Shown piece after piece: positions 1,179 through 40,127 of a stretch of DNA of 64,000 nucleotides (the first letter of the stretch is position 1; every line of letters starts with the position of its first letter). A model generated the notes under the pieces. It ran no database searches and was not told the DNA's origin. It saw only the letters and a program-made list of their open reading frames with translations. A program made the position numbers and the translations under genes. The DNA comes from Neoechinorhynchus agilis (Eukaryota > Animalia > Acanthocephala). The stretch spans positions 2,322,638-2,386,637 of the forward strand of contig CM121341.1 in the NCBI GenBank assembly GCA_051530055.1. The letters are read 5' to 3'.

Positions 1179-4100
1179 TTATTGTTGTTGTTGCTTCTGA
1201 GTCTGATTGGTAGTTGCGGATGGCATTCCTGCCGTTGCGGCTGTACTTGTTCCAGTGGTTTGCCCAGAACTAGTACTAATGTTCCCGGGCATTCTAGATG
1301 CACTTCTATTCAGATTCAGAAAAATACTTTCGATTTCGGGCAGCCACCGAATAAAATTGTTTTGCCAAAGTTGATAGTTCGAGTTTCGAATAAGTTCAAT
1401 AAATGTGAGCATAAGACCCCAAGGATGAGGTCGACTCACTAGCAACCGTTCAGTCAGCACGCGAGTAACGATTTCCGATAACAGTGGCTGTTGACTTGTT
1501 TGACCGTGTTGATAGATATGAAGCATTAATGAACTGAAAAATTGAGTCGGTCCGTTCGGATACCTGAGTTGGTTAGCAATCACCGTTAAAAGAATATAAG
1601 TGCCTTCGTCATCTAATGTCTCACTGAGTCGGACTAGAAGTCCAGCTTGAGGCGATTGACTCGCTGTTTCTGGTGTTATTGTCTTCGATGTCTCGATGTC
1701 TTTTAAAAAAGTGACACCGGCGTGCTGGACCATAGCCGATAATAGTCGAAGATTATACGGTTGTTCTGAACATCTTTCTTGATCGTTCGGGTCAGGGTGG
1801 AAGCGTAGATTTTGTTTTATTCGACCGAGAATTTCATTTCGTTGATCTGGACGTGAAAAGAAAGTTTCAATGTCGCATTTGAGTGACTCGGGCTGTATGT
1901 CATGCATGTAAGCAAACGACGACGGTTCAAATGGTTGTACGATTAAATCCAGTTTTATGGGATCCGCACAAGGGTCTGGTGGTGGCATTTGTCGGAAATA
2001 TGCACTCAGTACCATATTACGAAGCTGTATAAACTGAATCGGGATTGCGTCGATAAGTTCATAGCAATAGTCGCACGTAAACTCAGGAAAGTCATGAAGA
2101 ATAACAAGAAAAAGTCGCAAAGCCGCCGTGAATAGTTCCTTTGTAAAACTCCGCTCTTCGCTGTTGGTCAATCGAACGAGTGTGCTCATTTTCGGCGTAT
2201 CGGGGCGTACTACCAAAGTTCGCTCTAAAAATCTAATAAGAACTGTCAAAAGTATGGCATATGAGTGAAGGACACGCGCTGGAGTTTTTTGTTGAGAAGA
2301 ATTGAACACTATACCCAAGACGCTTCCATTGCCGACGAGCTCAAGCCATTGACAAGTGAACTTTGGAGTTCGTGAAGGATTCAAGTAGTAGAGAGCGTTC
2401 ATGAATGCATGAAGAATGGTGAAATTGACTTGATCCGATTGTGTATTTGGACTATCCACGTTTGGAATAAGTGAGATTGTAGTGAAATCCTTTAGGAGAG
2501 AGAAAATAATACGCTGGTACATTAGAGCTTTAAACTGGGTCGCCGTTTCATGGTCAACGATGCACATCGCAGCCACAAGACCAAATACCTTCGCAAGAAG
2601 TGACATTCGTACTTGGTTTGTTCTACTATCACCGGCATTTCTGATCAACATTGTCACAAACAACGAAAAAGCGTCACAATTCATCATAAGAACCGATCGA
2701 GCAGATAATGATTGATTTAACACGGGGAGGTCCGCGAAAGGACCTTCTGTATCATGCGAACTATACTCTTGACCACAACCTGAATCGTTGCTTAAATCCA
2801 AACACATTTCGATACATAGTCTAAAAAACCTTATGATATATACGTCCGTTTTGAACATGCCTGTCATGTTCATCTGACTCACGAATACATTGAATTGTCG
2901 ATTTAATGCACTGGCTGAAAGCATCCCATGAGTGGTGAAGGTAGTTTTGTACATTTTGACCCATTGTTGAAACACTTCTTTAGTTCGACGAATGTATGAA
3001 TCCGGAAGGTCCAGTCTGTTTTCTTTCACCGAATTGAAGCCAGACATAAAGTTGGAAAGAGTCCGGACGCCACTTTGATAGACGCCAAGTGGATTACGAT
3101 CGTCAGCGTTTCGTTCAAGAATGTCATAGTTCATGCGGAGAAGGTCTACTTTGCGGCAGCGGTGGTCCATGAAGACAATGGACCGACCACCGTTTACCGC
3201 ATTACAAGCTCACATGTCTTTTCTCTATAGTTGAAATTTATAACGCAATACGAGTACACATGCTGAACCGTGAGTGTGAGATCCCCTAGAGTGACCAATC
3301 CAGCGTGGTAAATGAGACAATGTGTGACGAAATGATGAAGATTTTCCAAGAAATCCGCTCTTTTTTGATCATTTTCAGGGGATGATAAAACAGTATCGAA
3401 AATCGAATCGAGCATATCGACTTTGATGACGTTCAGGTGAACCAACAGACAAAGAGCATCGAAATTGAACCTAACTGAGAAACCTTCATTTAAACATTGC
3501 TGTTCATAAAAGTCGCTTACAACATCACAGACCCATCGCTGACCCATAACGGTGAATTCTACTACTGAAGCGAAAAATGTGGAAGCACCATCGCGAAATT
3601 CGGTCATCTCCCTCCTGTATTGTCTTAGCAATTTGAGAACCATCTGCTCAATTAGTGATCTAAGATCTTCTACACCATACTTTGGTTCATTGATATCGAT
3701 TTCATTAAGTTCCTGGAGAATACCAAGTAAGTGTGGACAATTAAGAGCATTCAGCTTATCAGCGATTTTGTTTACCGTGTACTGCATGGTTTCGACGAGA
3801 ATGCCGCGAGTTCGCCGGAAACCAGGGATCTGATAACCGACTTCAGCGTACATTGTTCGGGTTTTTTCACTTAATCTCTGAGCCGCTTCTCCAACGAGAG
3901 CGCAAGAATGTCCCAGCATTTGTGAGTTTGTCATTGCCTCAAGCGTCCATGCGACTTTTGGTTCAATGTTTTTTCTTAGACTATAGTAAAGACACGACAA
4001 ATGCCGTTCGACGTCCTGCATAACTCTATGAATAGAAAATCTTGATAGATAGCAAAGAGATAAAGAAAAGTTCAGATTCACGAGCTGATTGATTATTTCG

Positions 4101-19554: not shown

Positions 19555-20340
19555 ACTTATGTGCCATTCGGAGAAATAATCGTGTAGCCCAGCTTCTTGT
19601 TTCAACTGTCATATAAAAATTTCTGATTTTCAACCTTTTCCTTACCAAAAAGATTTTATTCACGCGCTGCACAGCCAAGCTTTTGTTTTGTCGGAGGAAT
19701 GCTCCTGATCTCGGATCGCCAGTGATTCGTTTAAGTCTTTCGACGGATGATACAAGAAAGATCAAATCGATCATTGAAGAAGCAGGTGACGAGTTAAACC
19801 TGCTTCTTCAATGATCGATTTGATCTTTCTTGTATCATCCGTCGAAATTTCATCCTGCTGGATACGAATGGCGTCCCAGAGAAGGCATTTTCCTTCTCGC
19901 CACGGGAATACTGTGACACCGTCCGGTCTACGGCCATCGATTCGGCAAAAATTGCCCGGCTGTAGGATGTTGGGCGCATTCACAGTATTCAGGGCACGAC
20001 TAAGAGAATTGCGTTCACTTCGGCGTGTCGTGAGTACCTTCCGCCTGATTGCCGATAGATGAGACCATGGCGTCCCGATGGTTCCACGGTCGCTCCACAA
20101 CAGCCCCGATTGGAAGCGCACATCGGTACTCCAAGTCTCAGCGACGCTGCAATCCTTACTGTCTCGTCGGAGAGAGGAGTACATGAGCCAAGCACCCGAT
20201 TCTCTTGTAGAGACTGCCGGCAATCGAGATCGGTTCACCAGATTACAAACTGTCGCACATTTTGCAATTTTTAAAAATCGCACTTTATCGTTTATTAAAA
20301 GATTCGAAGTTTTGGAAAATTCTGTTAGACACATACTTTT
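19555..20340 (-). mobile_element. CRE-clade retrotransposon 3' fragment (RLE domain), degenerate
   Basis: STRESGAW, RIAASLRLG, GRYSRHAEVN, DGRRPDGVTVFPWREGKCLLWD, ITGDPRSGAFLRQN.SLAVQR. Confidence 0.85.
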
Positions 20341-20399
20341 AGCCAATTACAAATCGCACGACTCTTTTCCTGGGTTTTTTATTTAAACAAAATCTATTG

Positions 20400-22724
20400 T
20401 CAATTGTTCGTGGTGGTGGTGGTGGTGGTCGAGGTCAAAGGCGCTCGTTGTCCCCTCCGTGGCCGTCGTCCTCTTTGTGCCCCCCTCGGCGGTGGCAATC
20501 CGACAACGCCACCTTCGGAATTCCTTAAATGAGGAGGTACATATCGTGGAGCATCAACAACTTGAACTATAGGTTTTGCTTTTTGCTTCGAACCTGGCCC
20601 ATTTTCGTTCTTTGCGGCATTGGCAGCCTTATTCAACATCTTATCTACATCGGAGTTTGTCAATGGCTGATACCTTCGCTGCTTGAACTGGACGTCATAT
20701 AGAGGCTCAGTGCATGCAACACGGTACTGGGAAACACCGGTCAAATCAAATAGTTCGTATTGATTGTCCTGTCGAAGACGGGGAGTTGTTGTGGCTGCGA
20801 TTAAGAACCGTCCACAGCTAGAGAATCGGAAACAGGTCGGCGTCGTTAGATTCCTAGCAGAAACGAGTTGATATTTGGCCAATAAGTAACTGTGTGGCTC
20901 GAGTTTCCCTTCATCGCTCGATTTTGGATGGCTTTTAGTTTTTCGGTGCCATATCTCCAAATACCCAGGAACATTACCGCTACCCGTCAATGCAAGACAA
21001 TGTCCATTGGGCGCGTATAATGCCCCGTTTCGCATCTTTTGACCTTCACGAACCAATGCTTGTTTCTTAGTGATATTGGGATGAACAATGTAAACAGCAA
21101 CCTTTGACTGAGCAAACACGACGCAAAACTCAGCGCTAAGTCCTGTGCCAAGTGGTCGCATCGCAACCGCATGGACGGTCCGCTCATTACCCATTTCTAT
21201 CGGTTGAAAATTCTCTGTCGATTCATTAACGTTTATAAAGTATAGACTCGATAATCCGTAACCAGAAAAATGCCTCAAGACAGATCATAATGTCGAAAGC
21301 GATTAGGCAAAGTGAGTTAAAAAACGAAGAACAAATTAGAATTATTGTTTAGAATTCTATACCGGCGGTAAATGATTATTTCGATTAAAAACGTTCAGTT
21401 GAACAAATTGATCAATTCGAACTCTATAACTTTTAAAAAGATCAGCTCCATGTACTCAACAGTTGAATATAAAGTTTACAATTAATGCGTTAAAATGTAA
21501 CCAAATTGGTTATTCGAAATCACATTTAAAACAAAAGAGCTAACTCAAAAAGACGCAAATCCCTAAATTTCCGTTTTCTTCGACATTAAATGATGTTAAA
21601 AGATCGACTCTTCATGATTTCGGCAACGATTCATGCATATCAGACGGTCCAAACATAAACGTAAAGTTATCGACCCGAATCCGGCGAGACTAAATGGTAA
21701 ACATTGTCGATAGCCCAATGTCAATTTGTAAATCCAAGATAAAAAAGGTTTAAAATGTCACTAAAATGGATGGATCGATGAAACGGCATTATTGAAAAAT
21801 AAAATTGAGGCACTTTTCATCCGTAATAGGATTTGGAAGAAGTTTTTGAGTTTTTGACAAGGGTCAAAACACCGGACCCTTCCGGTGTCCATTGGAGTTC
21901 CACTGATTCGATAATTGCAAGAGTCAATGCATTCATGGGCTTTTCCAGATCGAAATCAGCGCCGGGGACCCGTCTAACGATTTGGACCGTGGAATGCTGA
22001 GCGTTTTTTGGTGGCTGACAATACAAAGCAACGGTATTTGGGCACGTTGGAGAAATAGCGAAAGTTCTAAGGTTTTTAAGATGAAGACTCGTAATGCCGT
22101 CTTTGTCAAAAGTATCGTCTTTGCATCGTTTGAAAAATCTAAGGCTAGGTTCCTGATAGACGCAAAGTATTTGTTCATCCGTCGACCATATTGGTTCCCA
22201 GAGATTATCACTAGGCTGTTTAAAGCTCAGAACTGGGTTTAAATTGCTCCTTGGAGGGAAAATCAACAGATTGGGAGGACTTTCAGCCGTTGTTTTATAG
22301 ACGGTTTTGTGGAGAGCAATGTACGAATCTAACGGACTGAACACTGCACTGTCACAGCCATGAGTAGACCGGTGGATAATTTTCTTAGTTGCAGTATCCA
22401 ATAAAATTGTGCTAAAGAGAGAAAAGTGATGTTTAGTCTAAAATTAAAACTAACCTTTCATCGCCACCAATGAGTAAAAGACCGCCTCCATGAGAATAAA
22501 CCGTACATCTGCAATCTTTTAAATCTAACCTTAAGACGAGTTAAAAAAATTAAAAATCTTTAAAACCAAATTAAACTTACTCAGTCTCCGATACGTTATT
22601 TTCTTGGCTAAATTCGACGTCAGTGACAGTAACCCGGTTCTTGTATCGCGCTTAATTCAAAAAGCATTTAAATATCTTTCTTAAAGAACCAACACTGACC
22701 ACAAAACTGCGTCCTCGAATCCAT
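20400..22724 (-). CDS. EIF2A: Eukaryotic translation initiation factor 2A; three short canonical 5' introns plus a 565-nt atypical insert (about 21818-21254)
   Basis: SKSYYG...LYFI, ALTGSGNVPGYLEIW, AATTTPRLRQDN, YVPPHLRN. ATG at 22724; GT-AG introns near 22700-22650, 22580-22530 and 22455-22415. Confidence 0.9.
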
Positions 22725-23106
22725 CCTCCAAATTACGATGACAAAACTGAGAATAACGTGCTTTTTGCCTTTCTTTCGTATCTGAAACACTTCAATATTT
22801 TGGCGTTGGGCGCAATCGATTATAGCCAATTGGTGATTTTATCGCGTTTTGTGACGTGTGCGCTGTCGATTTTCGCACTGCTGGCCATGATTGTGAGCTT
22901 TTTTGTCCATGTCATGCAAATTTCACTAAATGGTCGAGAATCGTCAATGGTTTTTTATGGCGCAGAAAATTAGTGTGGATTAAGCGCTTTATTTCTTCAC
23001 CGTTTGCCTCAAGAAAGATTAAAATGAATTTAAAATCCGGTATTAGCACCTAAAAAAACACTGAAAAACAATTTTGTCGAATTATCTAGCAGACGATTTG
23101 ATCGTC

Positions 23107-23168
23107 GATAAACGCGTACAATCTTGTAAGCTTCCGAAACTAATCGGCAGTTTAAAATCATTTTAATC
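23107..23168. repeat. Dispersed ~55-bp element (second copy at about 28703-28770)
   Basis: GATAAACGCGTACAATCTTGTAAGCTTCCGAAACWAATCGGCARTTTAAAAT is present at both loci. Confidence 0.9.
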
Positions 23169-23225
23169 TTTCTTCGCATCAGAAAAAAATATGAACAGTT
23201 CAATCTTCAAATAATTTTCTATAAA

Positions 23226-23300
23226 AATAGAGACTGATTTGTTAATTGCCAATAACGTCCGACGGACGAAATATTGACAATTAATAAATCAGTCTCTATT
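23226..23300. other. 75-nt near-perfect hairpin in the eIF2A/RER1 divergent intergenic region
   Basis: AATAGAGACTGATTTGTTAATTGCCAATA pairs with TATTGACAATTAATAAATCAGTCTCTATT (one G-U, one mismatch); inner CGTCC-gac-GGACG. Confidence 0.85.
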
Positions 23301-23611
23301 CTTCTAATCACCAAAGAACACTCACTGTCTTGGCAATTTAAGAGGCGTCGTTAGCTATATTTCTCACAAAAATAGCGTTGAACTCTGTTCTTTAGGCTGA
23401 TTGCCTTTATAAAACAATTTTTGAATTCATTGTGGTTTTTTTGAACAATTTTTTTACCCATTAATTTTCGATTTTACGTGCTTTTATTCTTTTTTTTTGT
23501 AAAGAAATGGTTCAAAGAAGATTTTTTTTGCATTATCACCTACAAGTCTTGATTGCTTTCAAAATGTTTAGACAAACCATTCTCCCGCCTTGGGAGACTA
23601 TCTGATACAGG

Positions 23612-24274
23612 ATGCTTAATGACTACATGACAATTCCTCAGCAACCACCGCTAACTCCGGTTTCTCCAATCCCTCCGTCTCTTCAAACATCATCATCGTC
23701 GAAATCACCACCAGCGGCAACAGCCGTTGCCCCAAACGTCTTATATGCTCGATACCAATCATTGCTCGATCAATTAGTCGTGTTTCCGTTCTTCCGATGG
23801 ATAATGGTATTAGTATTGATCATAGCGTTCTTTATTCGGATGGTTCGTGTCCATGGATTCTATATTGTCGCATACGTGGCAGGAATATTTTTGCTCAATC
23901 AATTGGTTCAATTCTTAACTCCACGATTCTTACCATCAGCTGCTGCTTCAACCGGTAAATCGTCGGAATCGACCGCGATTCCCAGGAACCTCAGTGATGA
24001 ATTTCGACCATTTGATCGACGACTAAAAGAGTTTGATTTCTGGCTTGTGTCAATCAAGACCTGCATCGCCTCACTCGTTTGTACTCTATTTCCTTTTCTC
24101 GACTGTCCAGTCTATTGGCCGATTTTACTCATGTACTTTTGCACACTATTCTTCGTCACCATGAGACAACAAGTGTACTTTATGATCAAGTACCGCTATG
24201 TGCCCTTCAGCTACGGAAAAGCTAGGTATGGAACTGCTCAAAATTCAAAGAAAGGAAACATATTCATGTCGTGA
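23612..24274 (+). CDS. RER1: RER1 retention-in-ER sorting receptor
   Basis: DEFRPFDRRLKEFDFW, PVYWPILLMYF, MIKYRYVPFSYGK. Confidence 0.95.
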   Translation: MLNDYMTIPQQPPLTPVSPIPPSLQTSSSSKSPPAATAVAPNVLYARYQSLLDQLVVFPFFRWIMVLVLIIAFFIRMVRVHGFYIVAYVAGIFLLNQLVQFLTPRFLPSAAASTGKSSESTAIPRNLSDEFRPFDRRLKEFDFWLVSIKTCIASLVCTLFPFLDCPVYWPILLMYFCTLFFVTMRQQVYFMIKYRYVPFSYGKARYGTAQNSKKGNIFMS

Positions 24275-25380
24275 AGAAATCGTGAGCGAAAAACATGGGA
24301 GTTCATTGCTTGAATAAAGGGCCTAAGTCGTTTTCCAGGGAGATTTGGCTAATCCAATAAGCCAGGCGGTCGTAACAAGTCGTATTTCAAGAACCGTTTT
24401 GATCGGGGGGCGCTCAATCTTATCGCTTCTTGATCATGCTCGATTGCCACCATCTATTTTATTCTAATGAAAAATCTCAAATAAATCTATTGATGTCGTC
24501 AACTTTTTTTTTCTAAGTGCCGAAATTGTGGAAATGACACACCTTAATTTTTTGAAATAATATCTCTTTCCTTAGCCCCTAATTCCGTAGACCACCATAT
24601 CCGGGTGCAGCTTCAGTAGTCTTTTCGGACGAACTCTGTATCGCTGTAGGATCTCGGCGTTTGCTCCATTCACCTCAATTTTAACATTCCATGATAGCGA
24701 TTTTGGACGCTGTTCGCAATTGGACAGCTTTCGGCGGTAACAATACGAATCACTTTTAGATATATAATCGTTTCTGGTTGATCCGATTAATCGGTGATTT
24801 GACTTTATGTTACACTCATCGGTTCTTGAGAATTTGGCCCGGATTCGAATACCTTTTGGATTTAGAACAATCCTTTATACGTCGATCGTACGCCAATTGA
24901 TCGATCTAGCATTTTCGGATCAGTAGTACTCAGTCTGTTTGAAAAAACCTGAGTACATTTTTGGAATCAGCGCGTTGAGTTGCACTTAATGAACGTGACT
25001 ACAAAACATAAACGCTTTTTCACATACATCGAGCTTTGATTTGCTGTGTTGAAATGTGAAACATCCGTGTTTTCCAAACGCGCGTCTAAATTCAGGTGAA
25101 ACACACAAGCCATAAATCCGAATACACGATTTTGCTAATTTCAAAGCGAAGTGTTATTCTTTTTAATGGTTAGCCGGTTATATTGATCCAATGTGTTTTT
25201 TTAGAACATCTCTTACTCGACTTATTTTAACTTTTAAGTGATCGAATCACTTCTCTGATACAAGAGATCGGTTTGGTTGTATGCCCAAGGAAGAAGGAAA
25301 ATAAGCCGAGTAAGGGATATCGTAAAAAAACATTGAATCAATATAACCACTTACCAGTAAACATTAAAGAATTCAACACT

Positions 25381-25545
25381 TTTGTACATTTCGTAGTTGT
25401 GCCAAGAGGAGGTCAAGTAGACTTGATCCCTAAATCTCTCTTTTTCAAGGTCAAAGGGTTCAATATCCACAATCGTCTACGATTCCTAACTAAAGGAGGT
25501 AAACTCACTGAGAGGGGTACAAACTCAAAACCGCGTATGATTCAT
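25381..25545 (+). mobile_element. Diverged copy of the tRNA-headed SINE-like family
   Basis: TTTGTACATTTCGTAGTTGTG...GGTCAAGTAGAC...GGTCAAAGGGTTCAATATCC...AAACTCACTGA aligns with 14175-14310. Confidence 0.65.
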
Positions 25546-25670
25546 TCGGTTTAAGTGTGATTTTATGCGCTTTCCTGATGTAAGAGAAAGGTGTGGGTAG
25601 CCGAATAAACTAAAAGGAAGTAAAAAAGAACCGTTAATCAATTTTTATTGACATTAAACAAAAAGCCACA

Positions 25671-26114
25671 TTACATAATGTCGTCGGATTTATACATCCA
25701 ACTCGTTTCATCATATTTCTTCATAAATTCGTTTTTTAATTTTGATGAGAAATGGCTGAGATGCGTTTTTATGAGTGCTTCCGCTTCGTGATTACGAGCT
25801 AGCGACTCACTTAGTGCACAGGGCCAATCAGGAAGCTGAACTGTAGATTGATCTTCAGTAAACTCACTGAGTGGTCCTATTTCTGAAAGAGTTTCCTCGG
25901 TGCGAACTGTTACAACATCATCATGGAATCTGCGATACCGACGTTGCTCATCAGGAGGCAAGAGCGTCGAAACGAAATGGAGCAATGGGTCAGATTCGGT
26001 AGACGATTCCACTCTGGTACGAGGATTTGTGTTAGAGAACTCTGTTGATTGAGCAGAATCTGTTATAGTGCTAGAAGATGTCGGTGCCGTGATTGGATTA
26101 ACGTTGTCGCCCAT
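25671..26114 (-). CDS. Uncharacterised 147-aa protein directly downstream of the NDR kinase gene
   Basis: Clean ORF, acceptor-like TTTTAG directly before ATG, AATAAA after the stop; no family recognised. Confidence 0.65.
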   Translation of the reverse strand: MGDNVNPITAPTSSSTITDSAQSTEFSNTNPRTRVESSTESDPLLHFVSTLLPPDEQRRYRRFHDDVVTVRTEETLSEIGPLSEFTEDQSTVQLPDWPCALSESLARNHEAEALIKTHLSHFSSKLKNEFMKKYDETSWMYKSDDIM

Positions 26115-26262
26115 CTAAAACAAACGTGGATTCACGAATACGAAGTTGAAAAAGGATCAATGCTCGATCTTGATCGCTGCATGAGTGCGTTTGCGACTTC
26201 TGTCGAAGAGAAAAATGGTGTTATTCACTAAATAAGCAAAAATAAATCCTCAGTTTTTCTAT

Positions 26263-28469
<2,207 letters not shown>

Positions 28470-29321
28470 TTATATTATTCCACTGATTCTCTAGAATTAG
28501 AGGAGCCGAAAACAGTACAAAAAAGCAAATCAAACTTCGATCTGCATATGAAACTTGAACATATATTCTAGATTTGTTTTTGTTTGCCGTGAAAAATTAG
28601 ATGAATTTGCTTGAAGATTGAACTATGAAGAAAGATTCAAATAATTTTAAACTGCCGATTAGTTTTGAATATGTGAGTTTAAAAACTTACAAGCAACATT
28701 GTGATAAACGCGTACAATCTTGTAAGCTTCCGAAACAAATCGGCAATTTAAAATAAAATCATCATTTTAATCAGATTGATTTCGGAAACACACAATCTTG
28801 AACGCGCTCATCGAGGTAAAAACATGAAAAATTCAATCTTTAAACAGAATCTGTCAAATTTTAAAAATGAAGTTGTGTCTTTGATTTCAATCGGGGGGAA
28901 TTCCAATTTATTGATAAATGCAACCTTATTAACCTCCCCGATGACTGATTTGACGAAAATTCGTACAGATTCGTCACTCTCATTGGCTTTTTATAACAGT
29001 CATTCAGCAAGCTTTTTTGTCGATCTTTTTTCTTTGACAGAAAGGAAAACGAGTTACGTCACCACATAGAAAATATATATAAAATCGCGCTCAATATACG
29101 AAAGAAACAAACGAATTTAATGCGTTTTGGAGTTTAGTCGTTTGTTGTTTCGTTTGCGATAAACCTTTAATAAGTAGTCATTTACCGCCTGTGAAGAACT
29201 CTAAACAATAATTCCAATCACATTCCCCGGTATCTCCTTACATATCGACATTTTTACTCGTATTTAATTCGATCGTTTTTCTATTGAGGGTAATTTTTGT
29301 CGATAATTTTCAGAACGAGAT

Positions 29322-30442
29322 GTAAGGAGGTGACGTCACCACATAGGGAAAATGAATTTAAAAGTGCGCTCAATATACGAAAGAAATAAGAGCAAGAACT
29401 GTAACAGGAGAACTTTTCGTTTTTGGACGCGTTTTAGTGGGTTTTTATGTCGGAGCATCAAGGAGGTGACGTCACCACATAGGGAAAATGAATTTAAAAG
29501 TGCGCTCAATATACGAAAGAAATAAGAGCAAGAACTGTAACAGGAGAACTTTTCGTTTTTGGACGCGTTTTAGTGGGTTTTTAATGGTGTTGTTGGGTAT
29601 TAATATTTTTTACTGGTAAATCTGGACGTTTGGACACGTATCCATTTGATCATTCCGAGAGTTCCTTTTTTTTAGCATTCAGATATCGTAATGTCGGAGC
29701 ATCAAGGAGGTGACGTCACCACATAGGGAAAATGAATTTAAAAGTGCGCTCAATATACGAAAGAAATAAGAGCAAGAACTGTAACAGGAGAACTTTTCGT
29801 TTTTGGACGCGTTTTAGTGGGTTTTTAATGGTGTTGTTGGGTATTAATATTTTTTACTGGTAAATCTGGACGTTTGGACACGTATCCATTTGATCATTCC
29901 GAGAGTTCCTTTTTTTTTAGCATTCAGATATCGTAATGTCGGAGCATCAAGGAGGTGACGTCACCACATAGGGAAAATGAATTTAAAAGTGCGCTCAATA
30001 TACGAAAGAAATAAGAGCAAGAACTGTAACAGGAGAACTTTTCGTTTTTGGACGCGTTTTAGTGGGTTTTTAATGGTGTTGTTGGGTATTAATATTTTTT
30101 ACTTTTAAATCTGACGTACGTTTGGACATGTATCCATTTGATCATTCCGAGAGTTCCTTTTTTTTTAGCATTCAGATATCGTAATGTCGGAGCATCAAGG
30201 AGGTGACGTCACCACATAGGGAAAATGAATTTAAAAGTGCGCTCAATATACGAAAGAAATAAGAGCAAGAACTGTAACAGGAGAACTTTTCGTTTTTGGA
30301 CGCGTTTTAGTGGGTTTTTAATGGTGTTGTTGGGTATTAATATTTTTTACTGGTAAATCTGGACGTTTGGACACGTATCCATTTGATCATTCCGAGAGTT
30401 CCTTTTTTTTTAGCATTCAGATATCGTAATGTCGGAGCATCA
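29322..30442 (+). repeat. About 4.5 tandem copies of a ~246-bp unit made of the SPF30 upstream region plus its first codons
   Basis: ATGTCGGAGCATCA near 29692, 29937, 30184 and 30429; each unit carries the palindrome GGTGACGTCACC and a poly-T-AG acceptor. Confidence 0.95.
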
Positions 30443-31232
30443 GTCGTTATCGCTCCATCGATACCGTCATCAACTTGAACAGGTAGAGCTTGCTTTGCTT
30501 GAAGAGCCCACTAACTCGGATATGCTTTCACTCAAGTCTGATCTTGAAGAAGCGATTAGGCTCACTTCGGATCTTTTGGAAGCTTCTGGTGAAGTTCAAA
30601 TTACTTCTGTAGGTTCCGTAGACGACAACAACAACAACAACGATGATGTGCAAGATCTTTTGCGTAGATGGAAATGTGGAGATCGCTGTCTAGCGATATG
30701 GTCCGGTGATAAACAGTACTATATCGAAATGGAGATGTTAGATGAAGTGTGCCATTTGGAGGGGGGGGACGGGAAAGGAACACACCAACAACTGACAGTC
30801 TCGATGAATAATGCTACTGTTGATGAAATATTCGATAAGAACGGTATGTGCACTGTTGTTTTTGACCGCTACGAAACTACTGAAATCGTTTCATTGGCTT
30901 CCTTGAAGCCCATATCGTCCACTACATCGGGCGATCTACAGTCCAAGTTGACTTTGAAACAGCAACGTAAAGCCAAACGAGAGAAGGAATTAAGACAACG
31001 AGAAGCATGGAAAAAGAAACAGGCGAAAAAACTTGAGAGAATCAAACAACTTGAAGATGCTCGAGAGGCCGAGAAGAAGCGTTGGAAGGATTTTAATCAG
31101 AAGCTGGCTAGTAAGACCTGGAAGGGGGTTGTGAGTAAATGCCTTATCAAGAAGATTGGCCCTCAGGAAGAGATTAAAGGCGTTCTTGGTACATCACAAA
31201 CGAGATTTAAAGCCAACGGATACATCAAGTGA
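30429..31232 (+). CDS. SMNDC1: Survival of motor neuron-related splicing factor 30 (Tudor domain), with an 87-nt in-frame insert in the Tudor domain
   Basis: N-terminal YRHQLEQVELALLEEP...LKSDLEEAIRLT; Tudor WKCGDRCLAIWSGD..YY/NATVDEI; EKKRWKDFN. Confidence 0.9.
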   Translation: MSEHQSLSLHRYRHQLEQVELALLEEPTNSDMLSLKSDLEEAIRLTSDLLEASGEVQITSVGSVDDNNNNNDDVQDLLRRWKCGDRCLAIWSGDKQYYIEMEMLDEVCHLEGGDGKGTHQQLTVSMNNATVDEIFDKNGMCTVVFDRYETTEIVSLASLKPISSTTSGDLQSKLTLKQQRKAKREKELRQREAWKKKQAKKLERIKQLEDAREAEKKRWKDFNQKLASKTWKGVVSKCLIKKIGPQEEIKGVLGTSQTRFKANGYIK

Positions 31233-31333
31233 CGGGTGTGTGTGGCTTTTCACTCTTAGTACATAACGAATACTGCTTTCATATCCAAAAATTTTGGTCG
31301 AAGATTTTGGTTCCGTTAGAAAAGCGCTCTCTC

Positions 31334-31334
31334 G

Positions 31335-31369
<35 letters not shown>

Positions 31370-31371
31370 GG
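31334..31371. repeat. (TTG)n microsatellite
   Basis: About 12 TTG units read directly. Confidence 0.95.
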
Positions 31372-31474
31372 TCTAACGGTAGTGTCGAAAAATCAGCGCT
31401 GAAACGAAATTTTGATTTTCTCAAGTCTTTGGGGAAAAGAAAACCCTGAGTGTGAAATATCGTTTTAGATAACG

Positions 31475-33554
31475 ATGTGGCACGAAGCTCGTCGTCATGA
31501 AAAGAAGATTCGCGGAATTATGGTTGACATAAAACGACGAGCAGAACGACGAAAAGAAAATAATGAACGAAACGTTGGCTTGTTTTCATCTAATAATTGA
31601 AAAAGAATATTCGCAAAGGCCGCCCGCAATACGACTAATTCGTTGCAAGTTTTCGGTTATGCCAGTAAAATCTATAGAACCGAAAAGAACGACCAAACTG
31701 CCAGTGAACCAAATCTGTATGAGTTTTTTTACTCATTTTTTTTACATTTTTTAAAGTGTCAATTGGAATGGAACGGATATTGATCGATTTGATATTCGAT
31801 TTCATATTGATTCAATTGATATTCACTCTGGTCCTAAAACGCTTCTTGCAAACACCGCTTCGCTGATGGGGTAGGAGTGCCATTTGTGCACTTCTTTCAA
31901 ACCAAATTTTTAGAGAAATATCGCGGTGTAATTATGAACGATATCGAATATTGATAGAAAATGAAATTAAAGGCGGTTAGATAAAACTTAAGTTTATTGG
32001 CACGAATGCAGCTTATGTGTTTAGTTACTGACGAAGTGGATGTTGTCAAGAATATTCGATCGGTGATCCACCAGTCCAAGACGTAGGAATGATTGACGCA
32101 ATCGATTTTTTTAAATTCAATTTAGCACTTTAATGCAGAACCGCCCGTCGGATGAAATTAAAAAGAATAAAAATGAAAAAAGTTAGTTTTTTTGGTCATT
32201 TTTCATGAGAATCCTTTTTTTGGAGCATTTCGACAACCAATCAATCTTCATTTCTCGACAATTAACACACTCACCACCTCCCGCCGAATTCCAGCTTTTG
32301 TCCTTCCTCGACCGTGGCCATCACGCTGGCAGCGTTGCCCCGTTGTACTGCTAGCGAGATATTTTGTTGAAGGGCAAAAGGAAAAATTGAATGATTTTTC
32401 CCCGCCACTATAATTCAACCTTCTTAAATCTTTTTTTTTAATCTTAGGTGACTGGCGAAAGACTGCAGAAGGTATAGTTGAGAAGCATAGATTATGTGAG
32501 CGAACGTGTGCCAAGTACCAGATTCCTCTGAACGACTATCATGTGTATGTCCGAGAAGTACTCTCTTTAGACTATTCAATTCTTTTAATCATAGATTTGA
32601 AGCTGAAGAAAAGCAACAGGCGACCGAATTGGATCGACAACAAAGATGCGATAACGCGAAGAAGAGCAAAGAAGTTCGTATGGTTAAATATTGTCACTAA
32701 TGAGAAATGTTTTATAGAAAGTCCGGCGTATAACAACAAATACGACCACTACTACTTTGCGTTACCCTTTGAGTTTTGCGTTGCCATTCGCTGAAAAGCA
32801 GACCATTGGATTCGAAGAGAAAATATCTAAAAGTAGCACCAAGCATCGTAAATCTTCAAAGGAAGTATTCGGTAAAGAGAGACCAATATTTATTACTAGT
32901 TATGGCGATCCTGGAATGACTTTATCTAAATCTACGACGATATCGCCTTCTCATTTACCAGATCTACCAATAATAGAAACTACGAAAAGGAATGAAGGTA
33001 TTAAGAAACTGAGGATGAATTTGATGGTCAGTGAGGACATGCCGAAGATTCGGGATGGTTTTCAGTCTGAAAAACAGGAAAAGTCAGTATGGATCGACGA
33101 TGTGTTTGGTACCATTACCATATGGGTTTTCGGTATCATTGCTTTTTGCAATTTAACTATTATTTTTGCAGGGAATCAGACGATGAGTTTAAGGAGTTTA
33201 TGGAAAATGAGAAGAAAAAAGAGTATTTGAAGCCGAGAAAAGAGCAGACGTTTACTAAAGCAGAGAAACTAAAGAAGAAAACTCAAAGTCTTTTAAGGAA
33301 ACAGGGTTAGTATTTATGTTTCGGTCAAGACGAATTTTTCTTGCTTGGATATATTTTTAGCTAGAATCGATCGAGTGGATGATAGAAGAAAACAACATTT
33401 AGAAGCAGTAGCTAAAAGAGAGCGAGAGCTGTACTTTCAGTCTCGATCGATCAAGCCAAGCAGCGATTCCAAGACACAGCGGCATTGTAGGTCAAGATCT
33501 TCTAGTCGCACACGCGATGGCAGAATACCGCGATCTCGAAGTCCGAGACGATAA
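31475..33554 (+). CDS. CLASRP: CLK4-associating SR-rich protein (SFRS16/SWAP2), multi-exon; not every exon boundary resolved
   Basis: MWHEARRHEKKIRGIMVD.KRRAERRKE at 31475, IDRFDIRFHID, CNYERYRILIEN, RS-rich C-terminus; many short GT-AG introns. Confidence 0.88.
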
Positions 33555-33830
33555 ATCGATTTTCGAAGAGCGGTTAGAGCAAAAAATCGGCGAGAGTGTG
33601 TAGCATTGCATAAATACAGCGCCATTCTGATCGCAGGTTACCGAATTTAGCCCCAATTCTTAGACTATATTAAGATAATGAAAAACCTAGAAATTGATCG
33701 CTCCACGTCGTTTGCGTTTTTTTATACCGATGAAACCTTCTCAAGATCATCTTTTTTCATTAAGTTCCGGCATTTCCTTCCATGATCTACGCTGTGACTT
33801 TAAAAATTCTCGATTCAAACAATTTTTAAG

Positions 33831-34841
33831 ATGGCAGTTTTCAAACCGTTAAGTGGACGTGTGGTTTTTTTAAGGAGGCTGCCAAATGCTTTGAGTATCG
33901 CCTTACGTCCATTGGCATCACTCACTCCTACCGAAAAAGGCCTAATGGAATTTTTCGATAATGAAAAGAATTGGGGAGCGAACTACATCGTTCATGGCAG
34001 ATCCTGGCGTAAAGAGGAAATACGATTGAAGAGTAACATCGACATACAAAAACTTTGGTTTGTTTTTTGTAATTGGATTCTGTTTTTAAGATTAGATGTA
34101 TAGGTTCGTTCTTCTTAAAGAAAGGAATATGTTATTAACGATGCAAGAAGAGTATCGGCGTCAATATGAAGTATTTCCGAACCCTGAAAGGATAGATAAG
34201 GTGTTGGTTGTTTTATGTGAATTAATATTGTTGTTTTTCATTTGTATTGTACAATCGTAGGTAGAACTAAGTATGGAAAATATCCTTGAGGTTGTTAAAG
34301 AACGAGACGTTGCCGTTAACATGCTGAACAAAGGTAGAACAGGCCTAAATTTACCCTATAAAAGGTGCCAAACAAAATTAATAAACACAAATTCTCATCA
34401 CTTCTTTAGAATTAACAAGTTTGGATTTACTCAATTGTATTTTCCTTCGGAATATCTCGTTCCGTGGTATTTAAACGGTCGATGGAAAAATCTATGGTAT
34501 TATACTAAACTTCCGGTTAATATTTCCCATTTGGTTATTTCTTTTTGTTGAAAATTTCACAGGAGTGGTCCAAGAAATACTCTCTTGATTACGCTCAAAA
34601 AGTTGGTGGTAGAAGGCGAAGGGCAATCAAGTTCATTGAGAGTATTGTTCAGCAAAAAATCAAAGAAGATCCACAAATTGATGTTGAATTTGTTCGGTCT
34701 GAGCTGACAAAAAGGTTTCCTTATTTACGCCGAATGACAACTAAAAGAATTCTACGGCGGCCACTTCCCCAAGAAACTGTGGAAGGCGATCTTTATAATT
34801 ATATTTACGATCCTGACTATGAACCCAAAATTATTCGTTGA
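33831..34841 (+). CDS. MRPL47: Mitochondrial ribosomal protein uL29m, 5 exons
   Basis: [27 protein letters not shown]|[20 protein letters not shown]|[15 protein letters not shown], joined by short GT-AG introns. Confidence 0.93.
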
Positions 34842-35655
34842 TTTCTGTAAATATAATAAAATTCTACCGTTAATCTAAAGCTTCTGTAACATTCTTTCAA
34901 AAACTACGGTCTCCATTAATTTTATGGGTTGAATAATGTTGTTTATTAGGTTTTTTTATCATTCTCTTAGAACTTTGCGATATTAATGACCGAGTAAATT
35001 TCCTATAAAAATGTTAAGACAAACGTGTTAAACAATTGGAAGTTTAACATTTAAAGCGAGCTCACTAGTTCGTTTCTCTAGTCAAAATAAATTGCGAATA
35101 CTAACGTCGTTATTAATGGAAAAATATACGCATAGCAAGTCGATGTTTGAATTATACAAACATTTTAACACAATTTTAAGTATCTATTGTATCGGGAAAG
35201 CGATGCCCAGATCGAGGTGCAGTGAAGGCACGTCAGTACCCAAAACCCGGAGATCGTCTGGTTCATCCCGATCGTCTGTATATTGCTCAAACATCGATTC
35301 GTTAATGTCGGAGGTTGCTGCAGTTATACGAAAACACAGGTTAATTTCTAAATCCCTATCAAAAGTTGAGATGGGGACGGAAGGTACTAGTATTTTCTGG
35401 GTTCAAGATCAAAAACGTTGTCATGGCGGTAAGATACAACTTTTGATATTTGTGAAATCTAACGTCCGCGATGCACAAAGGCACGAATCAATTACTTTGC
35501 GAGCAATCCGTTTTATGCGACGTGTTTAATTTAATTCAATCAATATTCAAATTTAGACGCAAGAGCGTCGAAATGAATACTTTAAGGACTAATAGTTAGT
35601 ATTTTGGATTTGTAACAAAATCGAAAAAGTAATTTGCTTTACAGCAAACAAATCA

Positions 35656-36635
35656 ATGACGACGGATACAGACTTTTTGAACGATGATATCTTTAAACGT
35701 CGTATTTGCAAGTCTTTAGAGACAATCAGAAGAAAACTTTCTACATGTAAGTCTTATTGTGACTTTGGCTTGTCCGATTAAGTACGTAAACTATTGAGAG
35801 AAAATCCTTCGAGCAGTCATCTAAAATGCATTGAGCTTGTTTCTATCGTGTGGCTCGGGTACGCGAAATAGCCATTCCGGAGATCCGGGACAACAATTCG
35901 TTACGTTTTTCGTTGATTTTAACACGTCGCTGGAAGGTAGCCTTAAGCCAAACTTTGCTTCCATAGCTCGACAAAATCCATGCCATAAAAATCTACTTCT
36001 TGAGAGTCTTTTCAAGTGTGATCCCTTTATTGTGATACAACCAAACTCCAGTCTTCATAATCGAGATAAAATAATGAAGAGCTCTAACGCTTTCGAATCT
36101 AACGGACTTGATAGACGAATTTAGTTGTGTGGTCGGTAGTTGAATCTTTCGATTCCGCTGTCTATTATCCAGCGAGGATATCCTCTTCAAAGAATAAGTA
36201 GATTGCGTGTTATAGTTGTATTTCTTAAAAATTTACAGCTTAGATTTTTCTCAATCGATATTTGAAATCTTTAGACAGATTAGTCGGACTTGTGTACGGT
36301 GGAATCCTGGGAGTCTTAGTGAATGCTTTATTTCCAAGTGGCAAACTAACAATGATAGTAAGACGAATACTTTTATGTTACGGTTAAATAAAAAAACCGT
36401 TACAGAACACGGAGGGAAGACCTTTGAGTTGGAAGCAATTTGAAGAATATTTAGCAGAACGTATTGTTCACCAAGTTAGTATTCTTTTCCACAAACGTAG
36501 ACAATTTATACGCCACTATTGTCCTCAGATACACATTGGGTTCAACAAACACTCAATATCGCAACGACGACAGCACCAGAAGCATATGAATCGGCGTTTG
36601 TACAAGCGAAGCGACTCAAAAACATCTACAAGTGA
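35656..36635 (+). CDS. Probable multi-exon gene, product unknown
   Basis: Acceptor before ATG (MTTDTDFLNDDIFKRRIC...), donor GTAAGT near 35748, last exon ...EAYESAFVQAKRLKNIYK*; internal structure unresolved. Confidence 0.3.
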
Positions 36636-37493
36636 AGGGTTTGATCGCTCAGGATGGACCAATACAGATCACAGTAATTGTTGGTGGTTCTCGTCTATTC
36701 AACGTTTGGTTATACTTTAAAACTTTTAGGTAATCTGATGGTGAGAAGAGCATTAGCCAACAACTTTCTTTTCTTAATAGGAACGGTAAGATGAATTTGT
36801 GAAGCCTTAAATGGTTGCTTGTTTTATTTAAAAATTGGTTTCCAAAGTTTTCGAGATTATTAAGTATTTTGATGGATAAAATATTGATTAGTTTAAAAAA
36901 TCAATGTTTTTTAAAATCACATTAAAAATTCCATTTATTTTTAATATGTGCAAACATAAATATCAAAATAATAATGTAAGATTAGAGTTTTAGTGTTCTA
37001 AATCGTACTCTCTCAAGCTCAAATTCTGCTTGTTTAATTCCAATTTCTCTTTTACGGCTATTTCAGCTGTTTCCCGCTGTTATTTCAGTGATTTCTTCAA
37101 TTTTCTACTATTAAAGTTTAAACTCATGCCACAAAACTAAAACAATCTTCTATTAAGAATCTTGTTCCATACCAATCAACTCATCGCCACATTGATAGTT
37201 CCGAATGTGATTTAAAAACAATTTCACCAAAGTAAGCTTAAACTAAAAGTTCACTTAACATCATTTTCCCTTCTCAAAAAAGGAGTAATAAGTTTTCAGG
37301 GTCAAACGATGATAAAAACCAAGTTTCTACTCTTATTCAGCAATTGGAAAAACTTACCCTTATCCGATCACGTCGAATTTGTGATTCCTCATCTAGCTTA
37401 AGATCAAAAAAAGGTTGGTACGAGTTTGTAAATCATTTGCACCAGTTGTTTTGCATGCGCGACTTTTCCAACCATACTTTTTGATCAAGATTT

Positions 37494-39476
37494 TTGAAGA
37501 CTTGCTCTAAAATGAAAAAAGTTACAGACATTCCGTTCTTGATAATATTTGCGTCAAATCTATTCTTTTATTCCATCATGATCGGACTTGCTTGGTACTA
37601 TGGACACGGATCAAATCAAATTCCCGTTGATTCCGATGGAAATATTTGCGGAAAAGCGACGAACGAGTTGGTTGCCACAAAACCTTTGTTGTATTTCTTT
37701 AAACCGATTAAGTGTCTCGGAGCCATGATTACCCCATTTAATTGCTATTCCACTCAAATATGCGTTGAAAAATGCCCACTTCAAGGATCCGTTGTATGTC
37801 ATTACAGTGTAAAACTTGAGAACATGACCAACTCAAACGATGATTTGCCGAAAGGCTGTACAAGTGTTAAATTTCAAACTGTTCCTTTCTACGGTAGATG
37901 TTTCCCTGATTTTTTGTTCTCATTTACATCCAAGACATTGCCGATTGTGATTTTTTGATAGTTTTTAAGTTTCTCATTCTTCACCAAAGATCACAGTCAT
38001 AACAAACAAATTAAAAATGCCGAATTTTTTCAATCTTGTAACACAATCTTTTCTCAAAACATCTTGGATATTAATTACTATTATCTACGTAGCCATAACT
38101 TCAACACTCATTTACGTTGCACTCTTAAGATATTTTGTTCGTTGGCTGATTTTCAGTTCGATTTTATCAGCACTCATCTTATCTGTTATAATGTTCATCA
38201 CCTCATTGTTTCTGGTTGTGACCGATTACAGCAGAGTAATTCAACAGACAATAATTGGAGAATTAATCGATGAACAGTTTATAAAAATCCGAAATTTACT
38301 TGTAGTGTTTATTTGTATTTCTTCTATCGCCGTAACAGTCTTAATTGGGTTATTGTTTGGTCTCCGTAATCAATTATCAACGGCCGCAATCCTTATCACC
38401 GAAGCTCACAGAGCAATCTCAAACTCTCCTTCTACGCTTAATCAAAGATTGCAAGCTGGTACTTTAAAAGGCAAACCTTGATTAAGTGAACGCTCTGTTG
38501 GCCTTTGATTCAACTAATGGTTTTAGTGTCACTGATTGTTCACTATTTGTTTGCATGTAGCCAAATGAGATCCTGGTTCGAACACTTGCCTCATCTTGGA
38601 CTATTGCCGCTTAACAATTTCATCGGAATATCCATGCAAATCAGCGTCATTCTAATCACATTTTGGCTTATCATCTACTCATTCGCCATCGAACACATTA
38701 CTCTTTGCGACCTTTTCTGCGTTCAGTATCATTCGGACGATAGAATTATGAGACTTCCATTTGGTCAACTAATCATTTCTTACAAAGACGCATTGTTGTA
38801 TCATTCCGGATCAGCTGCTCTCGGTTCTCTACTCACTAATATATTAAGTTTTTTTCGAATATTTTTGCACCTAATTGGGCAACTAGTGAGTCGGATAAAT
38901 GCTTCTGGTCGTATTGATAAACTAGTCTTGATGTTTAAAAGCTTAACCGTCTTCGTTTGTACTATCTTAGAGAGGCTGACACCAACTGCCTACATATTGG
39001 TTGCAAAGGACTCTGAAGATTTCTTACCTGCTTGCAAGAAAACATTTGAGTACATCTTTAAAAGTGCCGTACAATATCCTTTGGTTCAGACAACTGCAAC
39101 CGTTCTGGTCGTGATCATCACAACTCTTGTTTCCGGCACAACATCTACATTTTGTTATACAGTACTGATAATCGCTCCGCATATTCATCCGATTTTCTCC
39201 GTTGAACGTAATTTACTCTACGTCCCCGTAATATTAAGCGCTGCTATTTCATTCGTCATTTGCTTTGCTCTCCTGAACGTTTATTGGATTGCATTGGATA
39301 CCATGTTTATTTGTTTGGTTCAAGATCTTGAAACGAACGACGGTTCTGTGGCGAAACCGTACTCAATGAGTGAACATTTGCTCAATGCGATGACCGTTAG
39401 TCAGTTGTTGCCGGAGGAAAAACTAGAACGTGCAAGACAAAGTATTAGGCAGAAAAACCTAAAACAAAATCAGTAA
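37494..39476 (+). CDS. Choline transporter-like protein (SLC44 family); true start uncertain; inserts near 37947-37989 and 38434-38489
   Basis: TDIPFLIIF, DSDGNICG, QICVEKCP, YHSGSAALGSL, AYILVA..SEDFLPACK, ALDTMFICLVQDLETNDGS..KPYSM. Confidence 0.9.
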
Positions 39477-39776
39477 CATTTCTAATACACGCACATTTCT
39501 GTTCGCATGTCTGAATTTTGAGCTTTTCTCGAATAAAAGCTATTCTCGTTTAGATGTGGCTTCATCGATGTCGTCACCACTTTCGAAGAGTGCACTGACT
39601 TTATCAAATCAACTGTTTTCTTCAACCGAATGCGACAGTTGGAGCTTTCAACCGGCTGCTGCGGCTAATCAATTAGGGGATTGTGCATGCCAATGGACTA
39701 GTCAATCTGAGCAATACTCAAAAGTTTATTGAAAAAACTAAAAACTAAAACTAGTAAACTATGTTTTGTTCCTGCT

Positions 39777-40127
39777 TCATGGGTAGTAGCAGCAACTGCT
39801 GGCCGGAGGTCTCGGGAATCCCGGCATGCACGGAAATGGTGGGCAGCATGGTGCTGGTGGCCCACACATCGGAGGAACGCACGGTCCACATTGTGGTGGG
39901 CAGCATGGAGCTGGCGGCCCACACATTGGAGGAACGCACGGTCCACATTGTGGTGGGCAGCATGGAGCTGGCGGCATCGGACAGCATGGTTGCGATGGCA
40001 TCGAACAGCATCCATATGATCCACAAGCTTGAGGTCCACATGGCGGTCCACAATATGGAGCACATTGTGGCGTCGGAATGATGCATGGGACGTAGTACGG
40101 AGTCGAGCAAGATGAAGAACCTCCCAT
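39777..40127 (-). CDS. Small Cys/Pro/Gly-rich structural protein with an internal 60-bp duplication
   Basis: CCPPQCGPCVPPMCGPPAP repeated; TATAAAT at 40175-40169 and AATAAA near 39730-39725 on the minus strand. Confidence 0.7.
   Translation of the reverse strand: MGGSSSCSTPYYVPCIIPTPQCAPYCGPPCGPQACGSYGCCSMPSQPCCPMPPAPCCPPQCGPCVPPMCGPPAPCCPPQCGPCVPPMCGPPAPCCPPFPCMPGFPRPPASSCCYYP

Follow-up and report, generated by a model that had tools for sequence, protein, structure and literature searches.

The closest described counterparts of the sequences analyzed here are the non-canonical introns of a tunicate, a dinoflagellate parasite and the euglenids. Introns derived from MITEs (transposable elements of the miniature inverted-repeat type) were reportedly described in the tunicate Fritillaria borealis by Henriet et al. 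in 2019. These MITE-derived introns are the only animal precedent; 95% of Fritillaria introns are non-canonical, falling into AG/AC and AG/AT classes, and U2AF is duplicated (Soo et al. 2026, PMC13326754). In Amoebophrya, a dinoflagellate parasite in which U1 is apparently missing, >60% of introns are non-canonical and combine inverted repeats of 8–20 nt with direct repeats of 3–5 nt and a variable splice position (Farhat et al. 2021, PMC7789003). Euglenid nonconventional introns have neither GT-AG ends nor a polypyrimidine tract, and their ends are base-paired (PMC11282704). Here, we analyzed a 64,000-nt stretch of the genome of the acanthocephalan Neoechinorhynchus agilis (GenBank assembly GCA_051530055.1, contig CM121341.1, a chromosome of 19.4 Mb, positions 2,322,638 to 2,386,637 of the forward strand; hereafter, the window), in which conserved genes are interrupted by inserts. 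An earlier note on this DNA had reported four of them, located in the genes for eIF2A (565 nt), an NDR kinase (677 nt), the Tudor-domain protein SPF30 (87 nt) and an SLC44-like transporter (56 nt), and all four exist at the places given. Two, termed E565 (eIF2A) and S56 (SLC44), carry transposon-like ends and are tentatively interpreted below as non-canonical introns.

Transposon-like inserts in eIF2A and SLC44

E565 interrupts the eIF2A gene on the minus strand (21254..21826, in window coordinates) and consists of 557 nt between two perfect copies of the 8-nt direct repeat ATCCGTAA (21254–21261 and 21819–21826, period 565 nt), the removable unit being 565 nt. The reading frame runs ...TCC TAT TAC GGA T/GA (slashes within sequences mark junctions), with a TGA stop coming immediately next; TTACGGAT is found again 565 nt downstream, and the frame resumes after the second copy. 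The first 14 nt past the repeat pair with a segment near the other end (arms at 21265–21278 and 21805–21818; GAAAAGTGCCTCAA and TTGAGGCATTTTTC), forming a 14-bp stem that includes one G-U pair, and three unpaired bases lie between the stem arm and the second repeat copy. Relative to 4,000 random segments of the same length, p values were 0.0015 for the stem and 1e-4 for the repeat.

Joined across E565, eIF2A becomes one open frame that aligns without gaps to a 50%-identical homologue (SKSYYG/LSSLYF versus VQSYYG/SSTLRF). In Pfam, the joined protein matches eIF2A once, across the junction, with 89.3 bits, compared to 66.5 bits for the C-terminal piece alone, and exact removal predicts the junction TCTTCCAAATCCTA/TTACGGATTATCGA. 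Pairs of the GT-AG, GC-AG or AT-AC type up to 60 nt on either side of the two borders were scanned exhaustively, and none kept the conserved stretch; all conventional-site solutions delete at least 13 conserved residues. E565 contains repeated, MITE-like DNA, since its bases 21335–21395 match a module (..GCGGTAAATGATTATTT..) common to an intergenic palindromic element with 27-nt arms (41983–42196, strand not assigned) and to positions 29166–29218. Among the 78 kb of this genome covered, E565 alone shares a module with other elements. Its anatomy is what a MITE insertion that duplicated 8 bp of target would show, and the gene is otherwise free of lesions. A word search for eIF2A relatives found only two, and no second eIF2A of the same genome appeared in a protein search, a weak negative as the window's own pieces were also unlisted there.

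S56 lies on the plus strand of the SLC44 gene (38434..38494), where two copies of ACGCT (38434–38438 and 38490–38494) enclose a 51-nt near-palindrome; the removable unit, 38434–38489, has 56 nt. Its 18-nt arms (38435–38452 and 38471–38488) pair with three mismatches (CGCTTAATCAAAGATTGC with GCAAACCTTGATTAAGTG), and comparison with random segments of the same length gave p = 0.0025 for the stem and p = 0.008 for the 5-nt repeat. The insert carries an in-frame TGA at 38479. After removal of the 56 nt, the protein reads ...SPSTLCWPLIQLMVLVS..., aligns without gaps to human CTL1 and keeps a hydrophobic P-x5-P segment (112.9 bits; predicted junction CAAACTCTCCTTCT/ACGCTCTGTTGGCC).

The sole conventional alternative in the ±60-nt scan was a GC-AG pair of equal length, shifted by 37 nt (38471–38526; predicted junction TGGTACTTTAAAAG/TGTCACTGATTGTT). 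This intron is well formed (AAG/GCAAAC...ACTAAT...GGTTTTAG/TG) but puts NQRLQAGTLK in place of the conserved hydrophobic membrane segment and scores 105.0 bits, a cost of 7.9 bits. By chance, the scan is expected to return about one same-length conventional pair per insert; the mere existence of the GC-AG pair therefore weighs little. For the SLC44 coding sequence, non-canonical removal is the likelier route but not a proven one. Of the 18 arm positions of S56, 3 are mismatched in a gene that is intact in other respects, suggesting an insert of some age that is possibly not brand new, although transposons may also start out with imperfect arms. In both genes, the inserts show this anatomy, exact removal is needed to encode the conserved protein and usable conventional sites are absent; the scan supports the view that neither S56 nor E565 could be removed at conventional sites without damage to that protein.

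Intervening sequences of the NDR kinase gene

Alignment of the NDR kinase (minus strand) with six orthologues revealed two extra segments, of 677 and 48 nt, inside otherwise invariant stretches. Since the kinase shares 70% identity with its rotifer orthologues across 450 amino acids, these intervening sequences, termed N677 and N48, must be spliced.

N677 (27039..27720) contains a TGA and splits TQFY/IAE, with homology-optimal removal at 27719..27043 (junction TGACTCAATTTTAT/ATAGCCGAAGCGGC). A GC-AG pair of the same length is located 4 nt downstream (27715..27039; G/GCGATT...CACATAG/CC; junction TCAATTTTATACCG/CCGAAGCGGCCCTT) and yields TQFYTAE, the change from I to T costing 0.5 bits. Its end arms (27709–27720 and 27046–27057, 12 nt) form a modest stem (p = 0.025). 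In the frame-restoring register, only one A (1 nt) is repeated at the flanks, which is not significant; the 'ATA' suggested in the earlier note is not a valid flank, and removing it together with the insert would not restore the frame. N677 further holds a tandem array of 2.9 units of 170 nt (27105–27603), is ~10 times longer than ordinary introns and has no T-tract at its 3' end.

N48 (27892..27942), absent from the earlier note, is a hairpin with arms at 27924–27937 and 27897–27909 (8–14 nt pairing; end pairing p = 0.10) that contains a TGA and splits AHV/RAERD. The scan found a GT-AG intron 3 nt downstream (27939..27892; AA/GTGACC...GATAG/A; junction GTTGCTCATGTTAA/AGCTGAAAGAGATA versus homology-optimal CAAGTTGCTCATGT/TAGAGCTGAAAGAG) that encodes AHVKAERD, the change from R to K costing 1.5 bits, and N48 was dropped as a non-canonical member. 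That a conventional pair of the same length should occur twice at no more than 4 nt from the homology-optimal borders has a chance probability of ~0.005, and both N677 and N48 are therefore taken as conventionally spliced. Their G+C contents are 0.35 (N677) and 0.50 (N48), and the longest T run is 1, compared to 3–7 in ordinary introns.

The kinase also served for phylogenetic placement. It shares 69–71% identity with bdelloid rotifer orthologues and 60–67% with those of other animals, and a neighbor-joining tree groups it with Didymodactylos and Rotaria at 97% bootstraps, followed by Brachionus. Other proteins of the window, such as CNOT1 and eIF2A, are very divergent, and the source animal is accordingly placed within or close to the rotifer/acanthocephalan lineage as a fast-evolving representative; a tunicate identity was considered and ruled out by the tree. 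At the N677 and N48 sites, introns are lacking in both Didymodactylos and Brachionus. The Didymodactylos carnosus orthologue carries a canonical intron at REQ/VAHV (1093–1163 of the locus examined), 12 nt upstream of the N48 site, while the Brachionus gene has one intron in its entire length.

Comparison with ordinary introns

Reading frames were chained against known families, which placed 12 ordinary introns in the window: three in eIF2A, four in CLASRP, three in MRPL47 and one each in ferritin and SLC44. All are GT-AG introns of 29–76 nt with 17–37% G+C, nearly all with a T-run before the YAG acceptor, and at least 12 of the about 17–20 introns of the window are ordinary GT-AG. One MRPL47 intron, with 29 nt (34534–34562), is at the reported lower limit for animal introns.

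For class statistics, the ordinary introns were compared to the four homology-defined inserts E565, S56, N677 and N48 (the last reclassified as GT-AG only later). Stem scores of the inserts were 16, 10.5, 9 and 14.5, whereas the 12 ordinary introns had a median of 6.5 (Mann–Whitney p = 0.005), and Fisher's combined p for terminal pairing over the four inserts was 1.2e-5. G+C values were higher (0.33–0.50 versus a median of 0.27; p = 0.0075), and the T fraction of the last 20 nt was 0.20–0.45 compared to an ordinary median of 0.45 (p = 0.037). These data support the existence in the window of intervening sequences whose ends pair, whose G+C is higher and which lack a T-tract, distinct from ordinary introns, and they agree with the previous description of the latter as AT-rich GT-AG introns without stems. 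A hairpin scan of open reading frame (ORF) junctions across the whole window was too noisy at stems of 7–8 bp, and an empty-site comparison of segmental duplicates showed no insert differences.

The four inserts originally reported are not one uniform class. Reverse-complementary ends had been claimed for all of them, which holds for E565 and S56, to a modest degree for N677 and not for the SPF30 segment (p = 0.46). Direct-repeat flanks, claimed for three, are confined to E565 and S56, whereas in-frame stops do occur in three as described (TGA in E565, S56 and N677; none in SPF30). Removal at non-GT-AG ends restores the family spacing without gaps in E565 and S56; for N677 and SPF30, GC-AG and GT-AG alternatives exist, respectively. 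Conventional sites, which the earlier note had listed as a possible refutation, proved unusable in E565, available once in S56 at 7.9 bits and nearly free in N677. What survives of the proposed structure-defined, perhaps MITE-derived class is the distinct composition and pairing and the MITE-like content of E565; SPF30, without the anatomy, and N677, with its GC-AG pair, do not conform. The suggested AT/AC...G-N end consensus was post hoc and is not unique, as no terminal dinucleotide is forced and the sliding ambiguity equally permits spellings that all start with TA or all end with AC/AT. A 3' AC/AT end is possible for all four inserts (chance ~0.03, likewise noticed post hoc), and three of the inserts then follow an exonic TAC or TAT.

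Relation to described systems

As in Amoebophrya, inverted repeats pair the ends of the intervening sequences (14 bp in E565, 18 nt with three mismatches in S56, 12 nt in N677 and 8–14 nt in N48), and direct repeats overlap the borders of E565 (8 nt) and S56 (5 nt), those of the NDR sequences being only 1–2 nt long and not significant. Further common features are a variable position relative to the hairpin, the absence of a terminal dinucleotide rule, some members with canonical ends and a G+C content and length that differ from those of canonical introns. Unlike in Amoebophrya, the host is an animal with mostly canonical introns, among which at most 2–4 of ~20 are of the hairpin type; in addition, one direct repeat reaches 8 nt, whereas multi-copy families and RNA support distinguish the Amoebophrya elements.

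With Fritillaria introns, which are removed without GT-AG ends, the inserts share transposon-type inverted and direct repeats and lineage-specific positions. Fritillaria introns have a YAY triplet ahead of the 5' site and another at the 3' end; such a motif is present at both ends of E565 (TAC and TAC) and N677 (TAT and CAC) and half present in S56. The 5' AG of Fritillaria, however, is unavailable for E565, S56 and N677 and available in N48 only; the host groups with rotifers, and its canonical introns dominate. The pattern fits an insertion-derived population with conventional or non-conventional ends, as in Amoebophrya introner elements and, in animals, Fritillaria only. A literature search found no paper on unconventional introns in the rotifer/acanthocephalan lineage.

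Similarities to euglenid introns comprise coexistence with ordinary spliceosomal introns, base-paired ends, repeat-like junctions, variable length and the absence of a T-tract, but the CAG (+4..+6) and CTG (−8..−6) motif through which euglenid ends pair is absent in every register, and euglenid hosts are protists. Fixed cut geometries (RNase III-like 2-nt overhang, bulge-helix-bulge and euglenid offsets) were tried and rejected, as none fits offsets of 2–11 nt. No Rfam family reached its gathering score anywhere in the window, and thus no group I or II intron or small self-cleaving ribozyme model was matched.

Plain insertion of a transposon into a coding exon inactivates the gene; target duplications of the hAT type measure 8 bp, and usual MITEs are longer than 51 nt. 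E565 (8-nt duplication and 14-bp repeats, with three extra bases at one end) and S56 (5 and 18 nt) resemble terminal inverted repeat transposons or MITEs, also in having no coding capacity, and E565 additionally shares its module with other elements of the window. This combination of terminal inverted repeats and target duplication is not found in N677, N48 or SPF30. Unlike plain MITE insertions, the two exon inserts are located in otherwise intact conserved genes, and one has only 51 nt. Lastly, the internal eliminated sequences of ciliates are also short transposon-derived coding inserts with direct-repeat 'pointers' and terminal inverted repeats whose exact removal restores the gene, but they leave the DNA during formation of the somatic nucleus. 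To our knowledge, such removal is known only in ciliates, with nothing of the kind in animals.

Proposed removal and competing explanations

We tentatively favor, with a confidence just short of even, the removal of transposon-derived inserts at the RNA level, which would include non-canonical introns in eIF2A and SLC44. The genome would thus carry a minority of insertion-derived intervening sequences with higher G+C, no T-tract and base-pairing ends, all of them removed from pre-mRNA. After transcription, the terminal inverted repeats would pair and bring the junctions together, and the insert plus one copy of the flanking repeat would then be excised exactly. Members with conventional ends (N48, GT-AG; N677, GC-AG) would undergo ordinary splicing, whereas E565 and S56 would be non-canonical, transposon-derived introns because their ends are not conventional. 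That removal occurs, that it occurs in RNA and which enzyme performs it are inferences. The enzyme responsible may be a tolerant U2-type spliceosome aided by the stem, a somewhat doubtful route that we nevertheless prefer to a separate structure-guided activity, which appears unlikely.

In favor of RNA-level removal, the eIF2A and SLC44 host genes have no other lesion, and the spliced NDR sequences share the odd anatomy of paired ends, a G+C content of 0.35–0.50 and a longest T run of 1. Several observations weigh against it. Look-ups with the exact proteins matched only the genome contig CM121341.1 (GCA_051530055.1) and no RNA-derived contig, and the accession numbers yielded no hit in the literature. 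Only two inserts, E565 and S56, truly need non-canonical removal, and their perfect flanking duplications are a signature of recent transposon insertion; moreover, both interrupted genes may be dispensable. Signals of the ordinary introns are normal and give no impression of a generally relaxed spliceosome, and the choice of the window for its oddity introduces a selection bias. No shared boundary motif or fixed stem-to-cut geometry was found (summed offsets of 2–11 nt), duplex energies showed no consistent difference between sense and antisense, and the small inserts have no other copies in the window.

Plain recent MITE-like insertions, whether heterozygous, strain-specific or newly fixed, might instead break these copies of eIF2A and SLC44, with the remaining cases explained by ordinary splicing or, in SPF30, a translated loop. 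We regard this as the main rival, somewhat less likely than removal at the RNA level. It would account for perfect target-site duplications of 8 and 5 nt and near-perfect terminal inverted repeats, and it agrees with the recurrence of the E565 module in the window, with the similar palindromic elements in intergenic regions and with recent segmental duplications, which indicate a dynamic genome. The NDR cases resolve to GT-AG or GC-AG within 3–4 nt at almost no cost in fit, and both eIF2A and the SLC44-like transporter are plausibly dispensable. However, two exon-breaking inserts in ~18 genes far exceed what purifying selection normally allows, neither gene has another lesion and divergence between the S56 arms already affects 3 of 18 positions. 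The same odd anatomy is seen in two NDR sequences that must be spliced, and the protein search with no second eIF2A adds a weak argument of the same direction. On this reading, the window would show recent MITE activity of an ordinary kind.

A broader proposal is that hairpin-ended, repeat-flanked inserts are removed from coding sequence, beside a normal spliceosome, by a structure-guided route that ignores splice-site dinucleotides, through spliceosome-independent excision of the euglenid type from RNA or precise developmental excision of the ciliate type from DNA; we consider this decidedly unlikely. Removal specifically at the DNA level, in which germline inserts are precisely cut from somatic DNA with the direct repeats as pointers, would restore the genes, and variable-length direct repeats with one copy kept, together with terminal inverted repeats, match transposon-derived eliminated sequences (cf. 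work on Blepharisma). It is nonetheless very improbable, given that no such system is known in animals, that the inserts are present in a whole-animal assembly, that repeats of 5 and 8 nt speak against a single transposase-type cut and that NDR sequences of the same anatomy have conventional splice ends.

Little credence can be given to an assembly or sequencing artefact or to exclusively conventional readings, with a GC-AG intron in SLC44 and a mis-assembled eIF2A. The assembly may hold errors, as the break in CNOT1 described below is best explained by a 1-nt homopolymer error, and the SLC44 GC-AG intron is well formed (AAG/GCAAAC...ACTAAT...TTTTAG). Yet errors do not take the form of a 557-nt insert with a clean duplication of 8 nt and inverted repeats of 14 bp, and the GC-AG reading loses 7.9 bits and the P-x5-P segment in a scan that should give about one chance pair per insert. 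Bypassing of the inserts by hopping ribosomes, comparable to phage T4 gene 60 and to the 'byp' elements of yeast mitochondria, can be dismissed almost entirely: SLC44 does have matching take-off and landing codons (ACG and ACG) separated by 56 nt that contain a hairpin and a stop, but a 565-nt gap is far past any known bypass, and hopping is not known for nuclear genes.

If E565 and S56 are spliced, this lineage would be the second, independent one among animals, after Fritillaria, to neutralize transposon insertions in exons as non-GT-AG introns and, unlike Fritillaria, would do so in a genome that still relies mostly on ordinary introns. Such splicing would bear on the origin of introns from mobile DNA and on the sequence freedom of the splicing machinery. 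Annotation is affected as well, since standard procedures split or truncate genes of this kind; in the recorded gene calls, eIF2A, the NDR kinase, CNOT1 and SLC44 each appear as broken genes.

Extra segment in SPF30 and frame break in CNOT1

The extra segment in the SPF30 Tudor domain (30727..30839, plus strand) is different from the preceding cases in that the 87 nt are in frame, adding 29 codons with no stop, no flanking repeat in that register and no terminal stem. With the segment retained, the intact protein gives a split Pfam Tudor match of 30.6 bits. Removal of the 87 nt (30727–30813) raises this score to 44.2 bits and aligns without gaps to human SPF30 (51.2 bits). A 93-nt GT-AG intron (30747–30839) reaches 28.5 bits for Pfam Tudor and a gapped 45.0 bits versus human SPF30, falls two residues short of the family spacing and costs 6–16 bits, while an 81-nt removal starting at 30741, flanked by the 6-nt repeat GATGAA, scores 32.7 bits for Pfam Tudor. 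The corresponding junctions are AGATGTTAGATGAA/AACGGTATGTGCAC for GT-AG and ACAGTACTATATCG/CTACTGTTGATGAA for the 87-nt removal. By homology, the 87-nt removal is favored, yet the segment lacks the hairpin and repeat anatomy of the others. Directly upstream of SPF30 is a tandem array of 4.1 units of 245 nt (98% identical; 29447–30442, also 29324–29583). The beginning of the SPF30 coding sequence (~15 nt, ATGTCGGAGCATCA) is contained in each unit, which means that the gene start belongs to the repeat.

CNOT1 (1179–10678) contains a strong hairpin at a frame break (3159..3196, minus strand; arms 3178–3192 and 3160–3170) between the frames 5425–3194 and 3209–1179. Distant homologues have a linker of ~13 amino acids at this position, and the downstream frame is open through the hairpin. 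One extra G in a GG run at 3197–3198 (ATGCGG/TAAAC) would permit in-frame read-through at the right length, and the simplest explanation of the break is an assembly indel or a frameshift. The hairpin was not counted as a 38-nt intron, as a 1-nt indel explains the break equally well, and a GC-AG pair 50 nt upstream was rejected because it would delete a conserved T-x-E-x-x-M-R motif. In the gene calls on record, CNOT1 is split into two genes of 738 and 663 amino acids. The protein is extremely divergent, with a Not1 domain at most ~35% identical to anything among 1.8 billion representatives. Its conserved part begins at the CAF1-binding domain, and a tandem array of 10.5 units of 156 nt (5930–7547) lies in a 3.5-kb gap upstream.

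Other repeats and features of the window

Two large duplications were detected in the region. An inverted one (99.7% identical) surrounds the TOM20 gene (51904–58964 versus 64150–71211, in window coordinates running past the window end), and a direct one (97.8%) relates −6084..−1089, before the window start, to 49225–54248. Together they raise the copy number of an EF-hand gene, a 268-amino-acid ORF and an SPF45-like G-patch gene to two or three. Palindromic MITE-like intergenic elements with arms of 24–35 nt and 86–96% complementarity occur at 23011–23174, 23220–23306, 25176–25348, 28590–28870 and 41983–42196; those at 23011–23174 and ~28620–28790 have sequence in common.

A satellite of 15 units of 126 nt (99% identical; 16248–18138) is open for 666 codons on both strands, a repeat ORF artefact that represents no gene. 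The G+C-rich, Cys/Pro-rich repeat ORF at 39698–40147 on the minus strand, with PPCGPQ... motifs, has several frames open on both strands. Furthermore, a pair of 330-nt inverted repeats (87% identical; 13492–13823 versus 14060–14418) contains degenerate retroelement-like reading frames, and fragments of non-LTR (long terminal repeat) retrotransposons are located at 1–1040, 19771–20346, 56199–56555 and 59551–60147.

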